Below are positions 7,330-55,562 of a stretch of 64,000 bases of DNA, one piece after another. This DNA comes from Gracilinanus agilis (lineage: Eukaryota). The notes under the pieces are model-generated. The model did not search any database, was not told the DNA's origin, and worked only from the letters and a program-made list of their open reading frames with translations. Numbering within the stretch: the stretch's first letter is position 1; each line of letters opens with the position of its first letter. A program made the position numbers and the translations under genes. The stretch covers positions 277,017,566-277,081,565 of the forward strand of contig NC_058135.1 in NCBI RefSeq assembly GCF_016433145.1, given 5' to 3'.

Positions 7330-8262
7330 ATGCTCAATTTCACTGATGTGACAGAATTTATTCTTCTTGGACTAACAAGTCGCAGGGAATTACAAGTTAT
7401 CTTCTTTGTCATCTTTCTAATGGTTTATATAATCACCATTGTTGGAAATATTGGCATGATTATACTAATCAAAATCAGTCCCCAGCTCAGCAGTCCCATG
7501 TACTTTTTCCTCAGTCACCTCTCTTTTGTGGATGTATTGTTCTCCACCAATGTTACCCCCAAAATGCTAGAAAATTTGATATCAGAAACTAAAACTATTT
7601 CCTATGCCAATTGTTTAGTTCAGTGCTTTTTCTTCATTGCCCTTGTCCATGTAGAAATATTTATTTTGGCTGCAATGGCCTTTGATCGCTACATGGCAAT
7701 TGGTAACCCTTTGCTTTATGGCAGTAAGATGTCAAGAACTGTCTGCATTCGATTGATCGCTTTCCCATATATATATGGTTTCCTCACTAGTTTGGCAGCA
7801 ACACTGTGGACTTATGGGTTGTATTTCTGTGGCAATATTAAAATCAACCATTTCTACTGTGCTGACCCTCCACTTATCAAAATGGCTTGTGCTGGAACAT
7901 ATGCAAAGGAATATACAATGCTCTTTCTTGCTGGTATAAATTTCACATATTCTTTATCTGTTGTAATTATTTCTTATCTGTTTATTCTCATTGCTATCCT
8001 CAGAATGCATTCTTCAGAAGGAAGGAAGAAAGCATTCTCTACTTGTGGATCCCATCTGACAGCAGTAGTTATATTTTATGGGACACTCATCTTCATGTAT
8101 CTCAGGCGTCCCACTGAGGAGTCAGTGGAGCAGGGGAAAATTGGGGCTGTGTTTTATACCACAGTAATTCCCATGCTGAATCCCATGATCTATAGCCTGA
8201 GAAACAAAGATGTGAAAGAAGCCATGATAAGATTGATAAACAAAATATGTTCAGTCAAATAA
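7330..8262 (+). CDS. OR5M3: Olfactory receptor, OR5M3-like, intact, 310 aa
   Basis: Single-exon ORF with N-glycosylation sequon NFT and motifs [29 protein letters not shown] and [12 protein letters not shown]. Confidence 0.96.
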
Positions 8263-14962: not shown

Positions 14963-15901
14963 ATGCCAACTCCAAATTATACAGATGTGACTGAATTTAT
15001 TCTTTTGGGTCTAACTAGTCAACAAGAACTCCAGGTCCTCTTTTTTGTGATATTCTTATTTGTATATATTATCACTCTGGTGGGGAATCTTGGCATGATC
15101 ATCCTAATCAAGGTCAGTCCCAAGCTTCAGAGCCCTATGTACTTCTTTCTCAGCCATTTGTCCTTTGTGGATGCCTGGTTCTCCTCCAATGTTACCCCTA
15201 AGATGCTGGAAAACTTATTATCCAAGACAAAAACAATTTCTTATGTTGGGTGTTTAATACAATGTTATTTTTTTATTGCTCTTGTACTTATGGAAGTTAA
15301 TATCTTAGCAGTGATGGCCTTTGATCGATTTATGGCAATCTGGAACCCTCTCCTTTATGGGAGCAAAATGTCAAGGATAGTTTGCATTTGGCTAATCACA
15401 GTCCCTTATGTTTATGGGTTCTCTATTAGCATAATTTGTACCTGGTGGACCCATGGATTGTATTTCTGTGGAAACTTTGAAATCAACCACTTCTATTGTG
15501 CAGATCCACCACTCATCAAGATAGCCTGTGGTGGTATTCATATCAAGGAATATAGCATGCTTGTTCATGCAGGAATTAATATCACATGCTCTCTGACTGT
15601 GGTACTGATCTCTTACACATGCATTGTAGTGGCCATCCTCAGAATACGCTCTGCAGAGGGGAGAAGGAAAGCATTTTCCACCTGTAGCTCTCACCTCACA
15701 GCTGTCACAATCTTTTATGGGACTCTCATTTTCATGTATCTCAGGCATCCCACAAAGGAATCTGTAGAGCAGAGCAAAATGGTGGCTGTATTTTATACAA
15801 CAATTATCCCTATGTTGAATCCTATGATCTATAGCCTAAGGAACAAGGATGTAAAAGAGGCAATGAATAAAGCTATTCATAGAGCTTTTTTCACAAAATA
15901 A
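14963..15901 (+). CDS. OR5M9: Olfactory receptor, OR5M9-like, intact ORF (312 aa) but diverged
   Basis: Full OR motif set; about 87% amino-acid identity to 30885-31823 (40 differences by hand count). Unusual residues include MAIWNP, VLME and STCSSH. Confidence 0.92.
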
Positions 15902-30884: not shown

Positions 30885-31823
30885 ATGCCAAGCCCAAATT
30901 ATACAGATGTGACTGAATTTATCCTATTGGGCTTAACCAGTCGCCAAGAACTCCAGGTCATGTTTTTTGTTATATTCTTAGTTGTTTATGTTATTACTCT
31001 GGTTGGGAATATTGGCATGATTATGCTCATCAGCATCAGTCCTCAGCTCCAGAGTCCCATGTACTTCTTTCTAAGTCACTTGTCTTTTGTGGATGTCTGG
31101 TTCTCCTCCAATGTTACCCCAAAGATGCTGGAAAACTTATTATCCAAGACAAAAACCATTTCTTATGTTGGGTGCTTAATACAGTGTTATTTTTTTATTG
31201 CTCTTGTCCATGTAGAAGTCTATATCCTAGCTGTGATGGCCTTTGATCGATTTATGGCCATCTGTAACCCTCTGCTTTATGGGAGCAAAATGTCAAGGAC
31301 AGTTTGCATTCGGTTAATCTCGGTGCCTTATGTTTATGGCTTCTCTGTGAGCCTCATTTGTACCTTGTGGACGTATGGGTTATACTTCTGTGGAAACTTT
31401 GAAATCAACCACTTCTATTGCGCAGATCCACCACTCATCAAGATAGCCTGTGGAGGCATCCATATCAAGGAATATACCATGATTGTCATTGCAGGAATTA
31501 ATTTCACATACTCTTTGTCTGTCGTTCTGATCTCTTACACATTCATCGTGGTGGCAATTCTCCGCATGCGCTCTGCTGAGGGGAGAAAGAAGGCTTTCTC
31601 CACTTGTGGCTCTCACCTCACAGCTGTCACAATGTTTTATGGCACTCTTATTTTCATGTATCTCAGGCGCCCCACAGAGGAGTCTGTAGAGCAGGGGAAA
31701 ATGGTGGCTGTGTTTTATACCACAATCATTCCTATGTTGAATCCCATGATCTATAGTCTAAGGAACAAGGATGTAAAAGAAGCAATGAACAAAGCTATTC
31801 AGAGGTCTTGTTTTATGAAATGA
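30885..31823 (+). CDS. OR5M9: Olfactory receptor, OR5M9-like, intact, 312 aa
   Basis: Canonical motifs ([31 protein letters not shown]); very close to recalled human OR5M9 ([48 protein letters not shown]). Confidence 0.95.
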
Positions 31824-42103: not shown

Positions 42104-43060
42104 TCAATTTTTTAAATATACCAAGGGCAATGAATGCAACTTTTCAAAAACTTTTCCAAGGGCATTTTTCACTTCTTTATTCCTCAGGCTGTAGATCATA
42201 GGATTCAGCATGGGGATCACCATTGTATAGAACACTGAGGCCATCTTATCTGTATCCAGGGAATGGTTGGACTTAGGCTGTAGATACATAAAAATCAGTG
42301 TTCCATAGAATACAATGACTGCTGTCAGGTGAGAGGCACAGGTGGAGAAAGCTTTGAGTCTGCCTTCAGTGGACTGGATCTTCAAAATGGCAATGACAAT
42401 GTATAAGTATGAAATGAGAACTGTTGAGAGGGAGCTGATCATGTTGAACCCAGCAAAGATAAAAATCAATATCTCTTTCAGACTGGTGTCTGAGCAAGCA
42501 AGTGACATCAGTGGGACATCATCACAGTAGAAATGATTGATGATATTCGGACCACAATAGATCAAGCGAAATGTAACCACGGTGTGAAAGAAAGCAACTG
42601 AAAAGCTATACAAGTAGGGACCTATTACCAATTGTACACAAACCCTTTGAGACATAATCACCATGTAGAGAAGGGGATTACAGATGGCCACATAGCGGTC
42701 ATATGCCATCACAGCAAGGAGGAGCATCTCTGAAATTAAGAATGTAAGAAAAAAGCCTAGTTGAGTTGCACAAGCATAGAAAGAAATTCTATTATCCTTG
42801 GTCAAGAGGGTTGACAAGAACTTTGGAGCTATCGAGGAAGAGTAACAGAGGTCAACAAAGGCCAAGTTACTGAGGAAAAAGTACATGGGTGTGTGAAGTC
42901 GGGTGTCTAATCGAATTAGTGAGATCATACCAGTGTTCCCTAGCACTGTTAGAGAGTACACCACAAAGATAAGCACAAAGAGGACAATTTGCAGCTCTCT
43001 AGAAAGCAAAAATCCCTGAAGAATGAACTCAGTAACCAAGGTGATATTTCTTTCAGCCAT
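42104..43060 (-). CDS. Olfactory receptor, OR8U-family-like (resembles OR8U1 and OR8U3/OR5R1), intact, 318 aa
   Basis: NIT sequon, [71 protein letters not shown]. The exact ortholog cannot be resolved by eye. Confidence 0.94.
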
Positions 43061-43081
43061 CTACTCCATGATATTCATATC

Positions 43082-43105
43082 CTGAAGGAAAAGAAAAGAC
43101 AGAAT
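43082..43105 (-). promoter_or_regulatory. Splice acceptor of the OR8U-like coding exon
   Basis: The minus strand reads ttctgtcttttcttttccttcag|G, so the exon starts at 43081, 21 nt before the ATG. Confidence 0.8.
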
Positions 43106-44959
43106 TTTTAAAAGGCATCAAATAACGTTTCTATGATCTTGGAAGTTTTATCCAATGTCATGTCTTTTATATGATATTTTCTTGGAGGAGATGCTTCAGA
43201 TATACCAATTTTTTTGGGGGAAACACCTTTCATCTTCCCATTCCCACTAAATTCAGCAATAGAGTAAATTAGCATCTGTTCCAAGCATCTTTTATGGAAA
43301 ATTTTAGTTTGCATTGTGAAGTCCCACTATGGGAAAGAAAGAAAGAAAAATTGGGGCAAGAAGTAATTTAGTTTTAATAGACATGAATGCAATATGTTAG
43401 TTACAAAATTCTATGTATTTAATGAAAAATATTGGCCAAATAATGAGTCGTTATACTTAAACGAATGTTATGTATGTTTTTAACCAATAGATAAACTATC
43501 AAACTGAGAGGATTACCTAATTTAGCTCTTGGTTTGACTTCTTATTTCTGTTTTTTTTTTTTGCATGCATTAAATATCACAAGAGGTTAAAAAGAAGTGG
43601 CCTCTAATCACTATGTACTTCTGGCAAGAGAGTAGAGAAGGGCAAGAAAATCAAATTGTTGACTGTTGAGCAAAATTTAAAAAGACTCATCTAGTAATGC
43701 ATTTATTTCATCTTAGATTTTTTTGCGGTGGCATTTTTTTTGTTTTTAGAAATGCCATGTTCTATAAGGGATTATTATGGTCATGCTGTCTTAAAGGACT
43801 ACTGATAGCAAACATACATACCAAGTATAAAAAGTAGAAATGAGATGAAGAAAAGAGTGAAAAGGTGACCATTGCATTAAGAGCACTTCTTACTTGGCTT
43901 TTTCAAGTGATCTGTTCTTGTTTTTAATTTAGATGACCATTCTGAAATAAAAGAAACAATGGAAAGATATAGTTAAGTAGAGGAAAACATTGATTCTGGA
44001 AGCAGCTAGATAGCAGAGGGGAATGCACTGCTATTTTTTGAATTAGGAAGAGCCAAGCTGCTTTCTGTCTGAAATATTTACTAGCTGTGTAACCTTAGAT
44101 AAATTATTTAAATTCTTTGTGACTCAATTGCTGTTTGTTTCATCCATCTATAAATTGGGGTTAGAATGAAAGACCTCTAAAGTCCTCTCCAGTTCTAATT
44201 CAATGAAGTTACAAGTTTCTATTTTCTTGGGCAAAAAGACCCTTAGTTTTCCCTGGAATGATCAATTTCCTTACTCACTAAAGATGTAATTCTTTCCTTT
44301 TTGAGATGCAAAGTAGAATAATATAGGATGGAGTAAGAACGATTATATTAGTCATCTCATACCTGAGGTGATAGAAGATAAGGTGAGGCAACAATAGATA
44401 GATGAGAAAGGTGAAAGAGTATTAAGACAGAGTAAAGAGTGGCCCAGATTTAAATTTGCAAAAGACATTTACTAGTTATGTGAACATGAGAAAGTTGAAT
44501 AACATCTCTGAGCACTAGCTGCCTTATCTGTAAAAAAAAAAGGACAATAAAGCATGTAAAAATATGGCTTTTCTGAGGCTGTTTCATTTGAGAATGTATT
44601 CTTTTTTCCCTAAGAAATAATGATGAGGAAAAAGATAAGTTATAATAATACATTCTTACATGTTAATATAATTCTTATAATTATTTTATGGCAAGTAGCT
44701 TTAAAACCACTTTAAAGTTTACAAAGCACTTTATATGCTATTTCATATGATCCTCACATTGACTCTGAGAAGTAGGTGTCTTTATTATCCCTATTTTATG
44801 CATGGGGAAACTGAGAATGTTATAAGTTATCTCTTGAATCTAAATGCCTTATAAAGATTTAAGCTTTTATTATTACTCCACACAGCCCTGAATTTTGTCT
44901 CCAACAATCCTGGCAAGGTCGTGTTTGATGCCTGGTGATATTTGGTTGCCTCTTGAGTG

Positions 44960-45260
44960 GGGAATCACCTGTGCAGTGCCCAAGCACACTCTTTTTCTTG
45001 TACAATCTCAACAAGCTAAGTATACATACAACAAACTCCATTTTTATCTCCTGGGATTGGTTCTCATATTTGCATATGATCTCCAAGTGCTTTTCCATCT
45101 CTATCAAAACCTGTTTCTGAGAAGGGATCTGTTAATAGGATGTAATATCTGAATATTGGTCTCCATCCCTTGAATCTTCCTTCCTTACATAACACGTGCT
45201 TTTGAAGTTTGATCTCTCATGGGATACAAAAAGGTTCTTCCTTCTCAACTCTATTAAATT
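44960..45260 (-). promoter_or_regulatory. O/E-site cluster, candidate OR promoter
   Basis: TCTCCTGGGA 45047-45056, TCTCATGGGA 45215-45224, octamer ATTTGCAT 45068-45075, E-box CACGTG 45193-45198, and a possible donor CAG|GTGATT at 44969/44968. Confidence 0.45.
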
Positions 45261-45451
45261 AGACTTCCATATAGTACTATATGCATATAGTAGTAAGTAT
45301 AAAAGGTATGTGTAAATTAAGATGAGGGAGATTTTCCCTCACTGTTTTCCTAAAGTGATATATATTTTCAAATTTGATATTTGATTTTCTGACAGAGAAT
45401 ATAGAGGAGTTATCATATTATTCCATATAAAATGTATTTTAATCATACTAC

Positions 45452-45481
45452 CTGGTCATGGGAAAAACTGAATGAATCCAT
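45452..45481 (-). other. Candidate upstream mini-exon copy 1 (ATG...CAG|GTAGTA), encodes MDSFSFSHDQ
   Basis: 30-nt phase-0 ORF ending at a donor-like site; part of a ~120-bp duplication with 46881-46997. Confidence 0.4.
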
Positions 45482-46950
45482 GGGGTCTTTTATTTTAATA
45501 CATACTTAAGGCTCCATTTTCCTTAGCTGGAAAAGGGAAGCTGCTACCATCTATGGAAAGAAGCAGCAGTATGAAAGAATAGAGAGATTGCTGGTGTAGG
45601 AAGCAGGGAAACTTAATTTTCAGATCTATCCTCTAACACTTACTATCTCTATGATCATGAACATGTCAATAACCTCTCTGAATTTTAGATCTCTCTTTTA
45701 TAAGGTCAAAATAACAATAGATTCAGTTCCCATTTCATAAGGTGATATATTATTCAACTTAGAATGAAATATTCACTTTAATTGGGATTTTCTGAATAGA
45801 AGCTACATTTTTTAATATTAAAGGTTTATTTGCTTCCCAACATTTCCCAATAATTAATATTCAAACTATGTGGTTTTGTTAAGCTTTTTTAAGATAATAA
45901 GTTTTCATTAAAATTCTGAGCTTCTAAGTAGAAGGGGTTTATATAGTATTTTGAATATGATAAAATTTTTTAGATGTTACTAAAGTCAGAATGGGAAGAA
46001 TGACTCCATAATTTTTTCCTCCACATATATACATATAAACAATATGTACTATCCAAAAGGGCAGAGATGGAAGTCCTTTTGTGCTCTATCCTACTCAACC
46101 ATATCTAAAGAATTGTGTTCAGTTTTATTTTCAGATGAGCATTTACAGGATGGAAATTATCCAGAGGATTATAGGACTATCAGTTGTAAGTTAAAAGGAT
46201 CTTAGGAAATCATCTAATTCAATTCCTTCATTTTATGAATAAGGAAAATCATGTCCATTGCTATTTAGTCAAAGGTTATAGAAGAAAATGACAAAGTCAG
46301 GTTTTGAACTCAGTTTCTTTGACTCCAAACCTGTCACTGAAACTTGTTACCTTGTTACCTCAAGCTAAGGGCATTCAGAATGGTGAAGGATCTCATGGTC
46401 ATGCCATATGAGAAATTCCAAGTTAAAGGAAATGTGAATGTTCTGCCTGACAAAGGGAAGATTAGGGAAGGCGAGATGGGACCATGAAAACTTTGTCCAG
46501 GTATCAGAAATGCTTCATATCAAGGAAATTCAGAAATTATTTGCTCTGTTCAAAGGGAAGAACTAGGATATTGAGGTGGAAGTCGTCAAAGGGTAAATTA
46601 TATTAGTCTATATGGGAAGAACAAAGTGAAACAAACTAAAAAACAAAACAAAACAAAAAGAACAAAACCAATGGAAACCTCCTGACAATTTAAAATGCCA
46701 CAAAGTAGAATGAACTGTCTGAGAAGTTATTTAATTCCCTATTAAAAGTTTTTCTAACAAAAAATTTAATGGCCACTTGTTGATGCTTCCCCATCATGGA
46801 GACATTTATGGAGATTTTTATCTAGGATTGTGCTGATCTAAATTGTCTCTTAGTTCTCTTTCAAATCTGAGATTGTATTATTTTCTGATATAGAGAATCT
46901 TGAAAGAATTCATTTATTAATCTATTTAATATGAATATTGATCATCTTAC

Positions 46951-46980
46951 CTGGTCATGGAAAGGACTGACTGAGTCCAT
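46951..46980 (-). other. Candidate upstream mini-exon copy 2 (ATG...CAG|GTAAGA), encodes MDSVSPFHDQ
   Basis: Near-consensus donor; same length and frame as copy 1. Confidence 0.45.
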
Positions 46981-48104
46981 GGGGTCATTTCTTTTGACAT
47001 AGACTGGAGGAAATCTACATATATATTATACTGGTGTACATATAACTATGAAGATTGTATCCCTTCTCCCCTTGGGTATTGATTATCTTGCTTAGTAATG
47101 GTGCAAAATTTTTGTTAACTAGACAAACACTCTAGAGGGTCAGGTCTCTCAAAGCCCAATTGCCATTGGCAATGCTTATTACTGAATGATTATAAACTGA
47201 AGGGATATAAATAGAGAAATGGGTACAAAAGAGAATAGTTGTTGAACTAGATATAGTTTACTGTTTTGTAGCCAGTCATCAACAAGATATTCTCTAGGGG
47301 CATTGCTATTTAGTCATATTTGACTCTACATGACCCCATCTGGGGTTTTCTCAGAAAAGAAACTGGTCTTGGACAATTCCTAGGTGTGCAACTTTGGGAA
47401 AATTACTTATAGAGATTATTTCTTTCTGTCCTTCTTTCTTAGAATTGATACTAAGACAGGAGGTAGGGATTTAAAAAGAAACTAAAACTCTTAATTTATT
47501 TTCCAGATCATTTTATAGATAAAGATAATTAGCAGTCTATTAAGTGACTTAAGCATAGTCAAACAGCTGAGACATGATTTGAACTCAGGTCTTCCAGATT
47601 CTAGGTCCCATACTCAATGCACTACACCACCTAACTGCCCCAGAGATATTAGAAACAGTAATTACAAAATCACGGAAATGGTGACTTTTCCAAGAGGTAA
47701 AAGTAAGAGTAGCAACTCATATTCTTATAATTCTTTAAGCTTTTGAAAATAATTTCTTCACAATATTTCTGTGGTGGAGATAATCAAAGGATCCTGTACC
47801 ATCCCACAACATTTTTTAAATCACTAACTAGAGTGAGGTCCAGAGAATTAATGGATTCTCCAACTCTGAAGTTCTTCCAATTGAGGCTGGACACCCTTAT
47901 ATCAATGAGCCTACAAGCCCACTCTGTGGAGATAGTCATGCAACTAGATGGCCTCTAAGGTTGCTTCCAACTTTAAAGTTCAATGACTACAAGTACAAAG
48001 ACAGAAGGGACCTGAAATGAAGGGACAATAACATTTAGGGTTCTGTCCTTGGTCCCATCATCTCTATATGTAAGCTTTCTCTCTTGAAAACATCTTTCCA
48101 AGAG

Positions 48105-49356: not shown

Positions 49357-51837
49357 CACACATTGTTTTGCTGATGTCACTTAACCCAAGTCTATTCCAC
49401 TGATCCTCCTTTCTATCTCTTAACCAGTACCATATTGTTTTGATGACTGCTGCTTTATAGTATAGCTTAATATCTGGTAATGCTAGGCCAACTTCCTTCA
49501 CACTTTTTTTCATTATTTCCCTTGATATTCTTGATCTTTTGTTATTCCAAATAAACTTGGTTATAGTTTTTTTCTAATTCAGTAAAAAAGGGTTTTGGTA
49601 GTTTGATAGGTATAGCACTAAATAAGTAAATTAATTTGGGTAAAATGATCATTTTTATTATGTTAGCTCATCCTACCCATGAGCACTCAATGTTTTTCCA
49701 GTTGTTTAAAAGATCTAGTTTTAATTGTTTGGAAAGTGGTTTGTAGTTATGTTTGTATGATTCCTGTATTTGTTTTGGTAGATAGATTCCTAAGTATTTT
49801 ATATAGTCTAGGGTGATTTTAAATGGTGTTTCTCTTTCTACCTCTTGCTTCTGCGATGTGTTGGAAATATATAGAAATGCTGATGATTTATGTGCATTTA
49901 TTTTGTACCCTACAACTCTGCTAAAGTTGTTGATTATTTCTACTAGCTTTTTAGTTGATTCTCTAGGATTTTTTAAGTAGACCATCATATCATCTGCAAA
50001 GAGTGATAGCTTAGTCTCCTCCTTGCCTATTTTGATACTTTCAATTTCTTTTTCTTCTCTAATTGCTACAGCAAGTGTTTCTAGCACAATGTTAAATAAT
50101 AGAGCTGATAATGGGCATTCTTGTTTCACACCTGATCTTATTGGAAAGGCATCTAATTTATTCCCATTGCATATGATGCTTGTTGATGGATTAAGATATA
50201 TACTGTTTATTATTTTTAGGAAAGGACCTTCTATTCCCATACTTTCTGGTGTTTTCAGTAGGAATGGGTGTTGTATTTTTTCAAAGGCTTTTCCAGCATC
50301 TATTGAGATAATCAAGTGGTTTTTGTTGTTTTTCTTGTTGATATAGTCAATTATGTGGATGGTTTTCCTAATGTTGAACCATCCTGGTATAAATCCCACC
50401 TGATCATGATGGATAACCCATCAAGAGCCCAACTTTTGGGACAAAAACACACTATTTGACAAAAACTGCTGGGAAAATTGGAAAACAATATAGGAGAGAT
50501 TAAGTTTAGATCAACATCTCACACCCTACACCAAGATAAATTCAGAATGGGTGAAACTGTAAAGAAGGAAACTGTAAGTAAATTAAGTGAACACAGAATA
50601 GTATACTTGTCAGATCTCTGGGAAAGGAAAGATTTTAAAACCAAGCAAGAGTTAGAAAAATTACAAAATTTAAAATAAATACTTTTGATTATATTAAATT
50701 AAAAAGTTTATTGTACAAACAAAATCAATGCAACCAAAATCAGAAGGGAAACAACAAACTGGAAAAAAAATCTTTATAACAAAAAATTCTGACAGAGGTC
50801 TAATTACTCAAATATACAAGGAGCTAAATCAATTGTATAAAAAATTAAGCCATTCCCCAATTGATAAATGGGCAAGGGACATGAATAGGCAATTTTCAGA
50901 TAAAGAAATAAAAAGTATCAATAAACACATGAGAAAGTGTTCTAAATCTCTAATAATTAGAGAAATGCAAATGAAAACAACTCTGAGGTACCACCTCACA
51001 CCTAGCAGATTAGCAAAAATGATAGCAGGGGAGAGTAATAAATGTTGGAGGGGATGTGGCAAAATTGGTATGTTAATGCACTGCTGGTGGATTTGTAAAC
51101 TTATCCAACCATTCTGGATGGCAATTTGGAACTATGCCCAAAGAGCAATAAAAGAATGTCTGTCCCTTGATCCAGCCTTACCATTACTGGGTTTTTACCC
51201 CAAAGAGATCATAGATGAACAGACTTGCACAAAAATATCTATAACTGCACTCTTTGTGGTAGCAAAAAACTGGAAAGCAAGGGTATGCCCTTCAAATGGG
51301 GAATGGCTGAACCAACTGTGGTATATGCTGGTGATGGAATACTATTGTGTTCATAGGAATAACAAACTGGAGGAATTCCATGTGAACTGGAAAGATCTCC
51401 AGGAATTGATGCAGAGTGAAAGGAGCAGAGCCAGAAGAACTTTGTACACAGAGACTGATACGCTGTGGTAAAATCGAATGTAATGGACGTCTGTACTAGC
51501 AGCAATGCAATGACCCAAGACAATTCTGAGGGATTTATGGAAAAGAACGCTACCCACATTCAGAGGAAGAACTACAGGAGTGGAAACGTAGAAGGAAAAC
51601 AACTGCTTGAACATTTGGGTTGATGAGGACATGATTGGGCATGTAGAACTGAAAGGACCACACCAATGTAACTATCAATAATATGTAAATAAGTCTTGAC
51701 TGACCCCACATGTTAAAACCAGTGGAAATGCGAATTGGCTATGGGGGCAGGGTGAAGGGGGTGAAGGGTAAAGTAAAAACATGAGTTATGTAACCATGGA
51801 AAATTTTTCTACAAATAAAATTTAATCAAAATAAATA
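49357..51837. mobile_element. 5'-inverted (twin-primed) L1: antisense RT part 49357-~50415 plus sense 3' part ~50415-51837
   Basis: Minus ORF 50399-49668 carries RT motifs ([13 protein letters not shown]). The sense part runs to the 3'UTR and A-tail. The two pieces abut in L1 coordinates. Candidate TSD TGAAAATAAT at 49347-49356 and 51838-51847. Confidence 0.87.
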
Positions 51838-55389: not shown

Positions 55390-55562
55390 NNNNNNNNNNN
55401 NNNNNNNNNNNNNNNNNNNNNNNNNNNNNNNNNNNNNNNNNNNNNNNNNNNNNNNNNNNNNNNNNNNNNNNNNNNNNNNNNNNNNNNNNNNNNNNNNNNN
55501 NNNNNNNNNNNNNNNNNNNNNNNNNNNNNNNNNNNNNNNNNNNNNNNNNNNNNNNNNNNNNN
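55390..55562. other. Assembly gap (173 N)
   Basis: Run of N. Confidence 1.

Follow-up and report, generated by a model that had tools for sequence, protein, structure and literature searches.

The 64,000-nucleotide (nt) stretch of the genome of the opossum Gracilinanus agilis analysed in this work (contig NC_058135.1, positions 277,017,566 to 277,081,565 of the forward strand, assembly GCF_016433145.1), referred to below as the window, carries an intact olfactory receptor (OR) gene, the ortholog of OR8U3/Olfr1038, and upstream of it two copies of a short unit, each combining an ATG, ten codons of open frame and a splice donor. An earlier note on this DNA, made from the letters without database searches, had described the unit as a duplicated mini-exon that would splice in frame to the receptor, and had proposed a relic or latent N-terminus split between exons as the best candidate for an undescribed system. 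Comparison with the orthologous loci of marsupials and placentals leads us to a different reading, in which the repeated unit represents ordinary OR gene architecture and its upstream reading frame is incidental, being neither a lost coding piece nor an undescribed system. The copy closer to the promoter (copy B) is likely to be a non-coding exon of the OR8U3/Olfr1038-type gene, either the first one or in any case one upstream of the coding exon.

A typical OR gene has between one and six 5′ exons that are non-coding and undergo alternative splicing (Barnes et al. 2020, PMC7055050). Of the OR genes of mouse, 86% have upstream open reading frames (uORFs) and 21.5% have in-frame upstream ATGs; the human figures are 55% and 13.6% (PMC7055050). 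Among the Olfr mRNAs expressed in mouse, 67% have been reported to carry uORFs of at least 30 nt (Shum et al. 2015, PMC4627058). A lowering of translation has been attributed to uORFs as well as to upstream ATGs (PMC7055050). OR promoters have O/E (Olf-1/EBF) sites and homeodomain sites at most 200 bp away from the start site, where conservation peaks; O/E sites are the hallmark of these promoters and a TATA box is found in a subset of them (Young et al. 2011, PMC3247239).

The receptor gene and the two copies of the unit

All features of the unit are read on the minus strand. The receptor encoded downstream of it shows 93% identity to Monodelphis OR1038, 88% and 86% to the koala and dunnart proteins and 82-84% to the placental OR8U3/Olfr1038 orthologs (318-321 amino acids, aa), all of these matches being full-length. 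Its main coding exon has its own ATG at 43060 and a complete N-terminus, with 100% coverage of the 318-321-aa orthologs across mammals. The exon is preceded by a strong acceptor composed of a polypyrimidine tract and a CAG ending at 43082, and the leader that follows (43081-43061) reads DMNIME and a stop codon abutting the receptor ATG.

Upstream of that ATG, on the same strand, there are two paralogous units of about 150 bp, copy A at a distance of 2.4 kb and copy B (46859-47010) at 3.9 kb, spaced by 1499 nt from start to start. They are 77% identical across 96 nt without gaps and 73.7% identical across 152 nt (E 6.6e-23), copy A corresponding to a part of copy B whose limits lie about 28 nt ahead of the ATG and about 95 nt beyond the donor. 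Copy B contains the upstream ATG at 46980-46978, the last exon base at 46951, the donor CAG/GTAAGA (the slash marks the exon-intron boundary) and a 30-nt frame encoding MDSVSPFHDQ; the corresponding elements of copy A are the ATG at 45481-45479, the last exon base at 45452, the donor CAG/GTAGTA (GTAGTA at 45451-45446) and a 30-nt frame encoding MDSFSFSHDQ. The ATG lies in the context CCCATGG in both copies. Every feature that the earlier note had listed (CCCC-ATG-G, the 30-nt frames and the donors) is thus present where it had been placed.

The same note had remarked that the core of the unit looked better kept than its flanks, and this was borne out: when the core is defined as GACCCC through the GTA of the donor, 34 of its 39 positions (87%) are identical between copies, against 81 of 132 (61%) outside the core (Fisher p = 0.003). 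The two 30-nt frames differ by five nucleotides, four of which change the amino acid. The ATG, frame and donor shared by the two copies reflect their common descent and should not be counted as independent coincidences, and the chance that an upstream ATG matches the frame of the receptor is one in three. No third copy was found in the window (next best matches E > 0.004), in particular none upstream of the other three OR genes there; an Rfam scan of 43100-48100 gave no matches, and no open reading frame (ORF) of at least 40 aa overlaps either unit.

Conservation of the unit among marsupials

For koala, dunnart and Tasmanian devil, 10 kb of sequence upstream of the orthologous gene was compared with the opossum window. 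The upstream region is collinear throughout in the four species. Koala, dunnart and devil have one unit each, 3.5-3.9 kb before the ATG, which is the ortholog of copy B, and copy A matches that same single place in their genomes. In the opossum, copy A separates sequences that adjoin each other in koala, and it does so as a clean insertion of about 150 bp.

In the four-marsupial alignment the segment 46997-46948 represents the best-conserved 50 bp of 5 kb (0.93 versus a mean of 0.55), and its conservation exceeds that of the acceptor region and of the start of the coding sequence. The ATG is kept in all five marsupial copies, in the context CCCATGG, or CTCATGG in koala. The unit is a selectively kept element with a conserved donor, located on the strand of the intact OR gene, and we regard it as very probably an upstream exon of that gene. 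The view that the copies are fragments of an interspersed repeat lying by chance upstream of the receptor, which two copies in the same orientation might suggest, appears extremely improbable: a profile of the unit finds only the two copies in the window and the single orthologous place in the three other marsupial loci (148 kb searched, no repeat library being consulted; next E 0.45), the unit is the conservation maximum of the region, and it is conserved at the syntenic place in eutherians.

Another block, with the core CAGAAAAT ... ATTTG, is located 55-100 nt past the donor (46848-46897 and, in copy A, 45366-45400, minus strand); it is present in all marsupial copies, copy A included, and is faint in placentals.

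Conservation of the unit in placental mammals

The profile built from the five marsupial copies matches the rabbit genome 2.4 kb before the ATG of the ortholog (E 1.9e-8), and the rabbit block is orthologous to a block in cat (70% identity, E 3e-27). Direct BLAST of the unit against cat gave nothing significant; homology of the cat block became apparent only through the marsupial profile, the rabbit match and the orthology of rabbit and cat. Hamster and Mus caroli gave weaker matches to the conserved exon block.

Seven therians (opossum, koala, dunnart, devil, rabbit, cat and hamster) could be aligned over the donor and about 30 nt before it, and the invariant letters of this alignment are those of the donor CAG/GTA and a pyrimidine-rich stretch preceding it. 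The acceptor TTTCAG, placed 17-21 nt before the start codon, is likewise invariant in all seven species. Since both splice sites are invariant in the seven therians, the exon-intron layout predates the split of marsupials and placentals. The upstream ATG is missing in the three placentals aligned (rabbit, cat and hamster).

The mouse ortholog, Olfr1038-ps, has been described with a span of 2814 bp and 1210 exonic nt (PMC4154679 supplement) and by a 6.1-kb curated model (PMC7055050 supplement). The span exceeds the exonic length, so the mouse model is spliced and consists of more than one exon. The conserved donor in Mus caroli implies an intron of 1476 bp, which is roughly compatible with the older mouse model and does not amount to proof.

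This distribution of invariant positions bears on the possibility that the conserved block is pure cis-regulatory DNA, i.e. a promoter or enhancer outside any spliced exon in which the GT after CAG is incidental. O/E-like and homeodomain-like motifs nearby and the second conserved block beyond the donor would fit such a role. However, the most invariant letters in the seven therians are exactly CAG/GTA and the pyrimidine-rich stretch before it, a matching invariant acceptor precedes the start codon, and the mouse ortholog has a spliced multi-exon model; we consider this explanation quite unlikely.

Reading frame of the upstream ATG

Reading frames were obtained by counting and piecewise translation, no joined sequence being built. 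In the opossum the 30 nt from the upstream ATG to the donor and the 21 nt of the leader place this ATG in frame with the receptor, with the TAG in between, and the corresponding arithmetic of the earlier note (a phase-0 splice to 43081, in frame and interrupted by the TAG) is correct. If spliced in this way, the upstream frame would form a uORF of 16 codons (48 nt and a stop codon), with G at position +4, that ends at the TAG before the receptor ATG.

The orthologs show that this arrangement is derived. Eight nucleotides inside the frame are present in koala, dunnart, devil, rabbit, cat and hamster and missing from both opossum copies, and because they are kept in the other marsupials and in placentals, the 30-nt, phase-0 state was derived by deletion. 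Measured from the ATG, the donor of koala, dunnart and devil is reached after 38 nt (phase 2); after splicing, the frame of these Australian marsupials would pass the receptor ATG out of frame and stop 26-28 nt into the coding sequence. The peptide encoded by the upstream frame diverges between lineages after residue 4.

Immediately in front of the receptor ATG, each of the four marsupials has the stop codon TAG, and cat and rabbit have TAA; hamster lacks a stop codon there. Two rodent protein models, P0134 of Mus pahari (340 aa) and P0139 of Meriones (327 aa), have N-terminal extensions which apparently run through the leader and acceptor region. In view of these extensions and of the hamster sequence, the stop before the ATG is not universal in placentals. 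The two further in-frame ATGs of the 21-nt leader are found in the opossum and not in the other marsupials, which indicates that upstream ATGs come and go at this locus.

These data allow the proposal of the earlier note to be weighed, according to which the first ten residues of the receptor were formerly encoded by the mini-exon or could come to be so again. The opossum frame fits such an arrangement, with the TAG alone intervening between its 30 + 21 nt and the receptor, and split OR genes are known, 41 of them in mouse and 13 in human (PMC7055050). Phase 0, however, is the product of the 8-bp deletion, the other marsupials having 38 nt and phase 2 and eutherians retaining the 8 nt; what the orthologs have kept is the donor, in all seven therians, while the ATG is confined to marsupials. 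Furthermore, the stop codon separates the leader from the receptor in the four marsupials, cat and rabbit, the main exon with its own start and complete N-terminus aligns to all orthologs, and four of the five differences between the 30-nt frames of copies A and B alter the amino acid. We judge a relic or latent split N-terminus to be highly improbable. The spliced 16-codon uORF in two versions, as put forward in the earlier note, survives in part: an upstream exon with a uORF is plausible and two versions of it are conceivable, while its interpretation as the remainder of a split coding exon did not hold. Nor does the locus call for an undescribed system, as published work shows uORFs and 5′ exons that are non-coding and alternatively spliced to be normal for OR genes (PMC7055050, PMC4627058).

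A different role for the upstream ATG would be that of a selected translational regulator, in which the ATG conserved in marsupials starts a functional uORF tuning translation of the receptor, the opossum possesses two such leaders and the deletion re-set the end of the uORF. This would agree with the retention of the ATG, within CCCATGG (CTCATGG in koala), in all five marsupial copies, with the constraint on the core of both copies and with the lowering effect on translation for which uORFs and upstream ATGs are cited (PMC7055050). On the other hand, eutherians do not have the ATG despite the conserved exon, the peptide differs between lineages after its fourth residue, conservation of the ATG is inseparable from that of the surrounding DNA, and the additional leader ATGs are specific to the opossum, in keeping with the turnover of upstream ATGs. 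We hold this rather unlikely. The more specific version, that both opossum copies are alternative leader exons under purifying selection and that the 8-bp deletion turned an overlapping out-of-frame uORF into one terminating at UAG-AUG, seems to us unlikely; if true, it would represent a lineage-specific re-wiring of translational control in one of the most conserved mammalian olfactory receptors.

Promoter-like motifs and the assignment of copy B

An O/E-like site is located about 90 nt before the upstream ATG. The koala sequence is a perfect match (TCCCNNGGGA), those of dunnart and devil deviate at one position and that of the opossum at two outer ones; shuffled sequences contain 0.4-0.7 O/E sites with at most one mismatch per 5 kb. 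Between this site and the exon a homeodomain-like AATTA is present in six of the seven species, the opossum being the one without it. Copy A does not include the O/E-like and TATA-like part of copy B.

A further O/E-like site of the TTCCNNGGGAA type was noticed at about 44600-44620 (minus strand), some 1.55 kb before the receptor ATG. Koala, dunnart and devil have it conserved at a single position of the alignment, and the opossum has a weaker version. An internal promoter or an enhancer could be located here.

The assignment of copy B to the first exon of the receptor gene has points against it. Some species have an acceptor-like AG about 20 nt ahead of the ATG, which would allow an internal exon in place of a first one. 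Both the 5′ end of the exon and its splicing are predictions from sequence. The intron of the mouse model, about 1.6 kb long, is about 130 bp off the estimate from Mus caroli, and in the opossum itself the O/E site has its two outer mismatches and the AATTA has been lost.

Proposed history of the locus

For the present-day opossum locus we infer that transcription would start near 47000, downstream of the O/E-like site and the AT-rich TATA-like run, that the short exon would end at the conserved donor after 46951, and that splicing over about 3.9 kb would connect it with the conserved acceptor at 43081, which leaves 21 nt ahead of the start codon; any translation of the uORF is likewise a prediction. 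The therian ancestor would already have possessed an O/E-type promoter, a short non-coding first exon, the conserved donor and an acceptor at a distance of about 20 nt from the start codon. The exon of marsupials contains an ATG that would create a uORF, the peptide of which has not been conserved. In the lineage of the opossum the 8-bp deletion then turned phase 2 at the donor into phase 0, and with phase 0 the uORF would end at the TAG abutting the receptor ATG instead of overlapping the receptor out of frame.

After the deletion about 150 bp, comprising the presumably transcribed part of the exon and the first 95 or so nt of the intron, was copied 1.5 kb downstream into intron 1, giving rise to copy A. 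Copy A keeps ancestral letters that are changed in copy B, e.g. GTAGTA as in dunnart, and outside the core its divergence equals that between opossum and koala, which together argue that the duplication is old and that no recent conversion has taken place. A short stretch at the 5′ junction of the insertion is similar in source and target, and one may speculate about a microhomology-mediated origin.

The ATG, frame and donor of copy A are kept better than neutral decay predicts, hence copy A may have a use as an alternative donor or a cassette exon. It might be included as a cassette exon behind acceptor-like sites near 45550, which are conserved in koala, or act as an alternative donor; it may also merely be slow to decay.

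Other features of the window

The coordinates of the features discussed are collected in Table 1. Apart from the exon itself, the region upstream of the receptor contains a candidate cassette exon that coincides with the second-best conserved blocks (43864-43815 at 0.91 and 43967-43918 at 0.84). Both of its splice-like sites are kept in the four marsupials, and the stretch may serve the OR8U3/Olfr1038-type gene as an alternative, non-coding cassette exon. Two stretches, 47300-47650 on the promoter-distal side and 45750-45900 in intron 1, are lacking in the aligned koala, dunnart and devil sequences and are probably insertions (repeats) of the opossum lineage.

Table 1 Features of the OR8U3/Olfr1038-type locus, in window coordinates
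Feature	Position	Strand	Remarks
Intact 318-aa olfactory receptor gene, OR8U3/Olfr1038 ortholog	42104..43060	-	7tm_4 at E 3e-53
21-nt leader of the coding exon	43061..43081	-	Behind the acceptor; two further in-frame ATGs; TAG at 43063-43061
Candidate extra non-coding cassette exon of the OR gene	43826..43943	-	Acceptor-like TTTCAG to donor-like TTG/GTATGT
Copy A, opossum-lineage partial duplicate of copy B, inside intron 1	45366..45511	-	Single copy in koala, dunnart and devil
Second conserved block, some 55-100 nt inside the intron	46848..46897	-	0.84 over 50 bp in four marsupials; also aligns in copy A
Donor of copy B, GTAAGA after CAG	46945..46950	-	CAG/GTA invariant in seven therians and copy A; same donor type in Mus caroli
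Copy B, putative first exon (non-coding) of the OR gene	46951..47001	-	Conservation; orthologous rabbit block; donor alignment in seven therians
AT-rich TATA-like run, about 40-50 nt before the upstream ATG	47018..47030	-	ATATAT kept in four marsupials; putative promoter role
O/E (Olf-1/EBF)-like site upstream of copy B	47067..47077	-	Core CCCNNGGG intact; aligned position in marsupials

Three further intact OR genes (310-312 aa, 7tm_4) are encoded on the opposite strand, at 7330-8262 (+), 14963-15901 (+) and 30885-31823 (+). Two adjoining ORFs are found at 49671-50399 (-) and 50728-51471 (+), one of 243 aa with an RVT_1 domain (E 2e-26), which is probably a LINE remnant, and one of 247 aa with no Pfam match; sequence related to this region also occurs in the koala and dunnart loci. 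Positions 55390-55562 are occupied by 173 N (assembly gap or masked).

Significance and relation to known systems

The value of the analysis is mainly corrective. An upstream ATG followed by an open frame and a donor, even one in frame with the receptor, is what a normal OR leader exon looks like, and such frames should not be read as hidden coding sequence unless orthologs support it. At the same time, the OR8U3/Olfr1038 ortholog has a putative first exon, a donor and a putative O/E-type promoter that are traceable from marsupials to placentals and provide a candidate start site for marsupial annotation; tracing of OR regulatory DNA to such depth at the level of sequence may be uncommon. The partial duplication of an exon with its core kept constitutes a small natural experiment on the origin of alternative OR leader exons.

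Among known systems, the split-coding OR genes resemble this locus in having a small upstream exon with an ATG and a donor, and an acceptor at the main OR exon. Real split genes have been recognized by an open frame together with conservation of the Met and of the junction (Barnes et al. 2020, PMC7055050); in contrast, the junction described here runs into a stop codon, the ATG and frame are not conserved, and it is the start of the main exon that is conserved.

The uORFs surveyed by Shum et al. (PMC4627058), for which a purine at position -3 or a G at +4 is asked, are comparable with the opossum frame which, assuming the splice, is at least 30 nt long, has G at position +4 and lies upstream of the main ORF without containing it. 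Unlike them, the opossum uORF would cross a splice junction and stop directly against the receptor ATG, and that of the Australian marsupials would overlap the receptor start out of frame.

The proximal promoters of OR genes (PMC3247239) may have their counterpart in the conserved O/E-like site, the AATTA, the AT-rich run and the conservation peak at the putative start; the opossum departs from them by the two outer bases of its O/E site and the loss of AATTA, and the start at this locus is a putative one.

The closest parallel is offered by the non-coding 5′ untranslated exons of mammalian OR genes (PMC7055050, PMC4154679). As in those genes, a short exon is placed a few kb 5′ of a single long coding exon, the acceptor lies about 20 nt before the start codon and alternative 5′ exons are possible, and mouse Olfr1038-ps, the ortholog, has a spliced model. 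The opossum exon differs in being predicted from sequence, in the unusually good preservation of the exon and its donor from marsupials to placentals, and in its partial duplication within its own intron.

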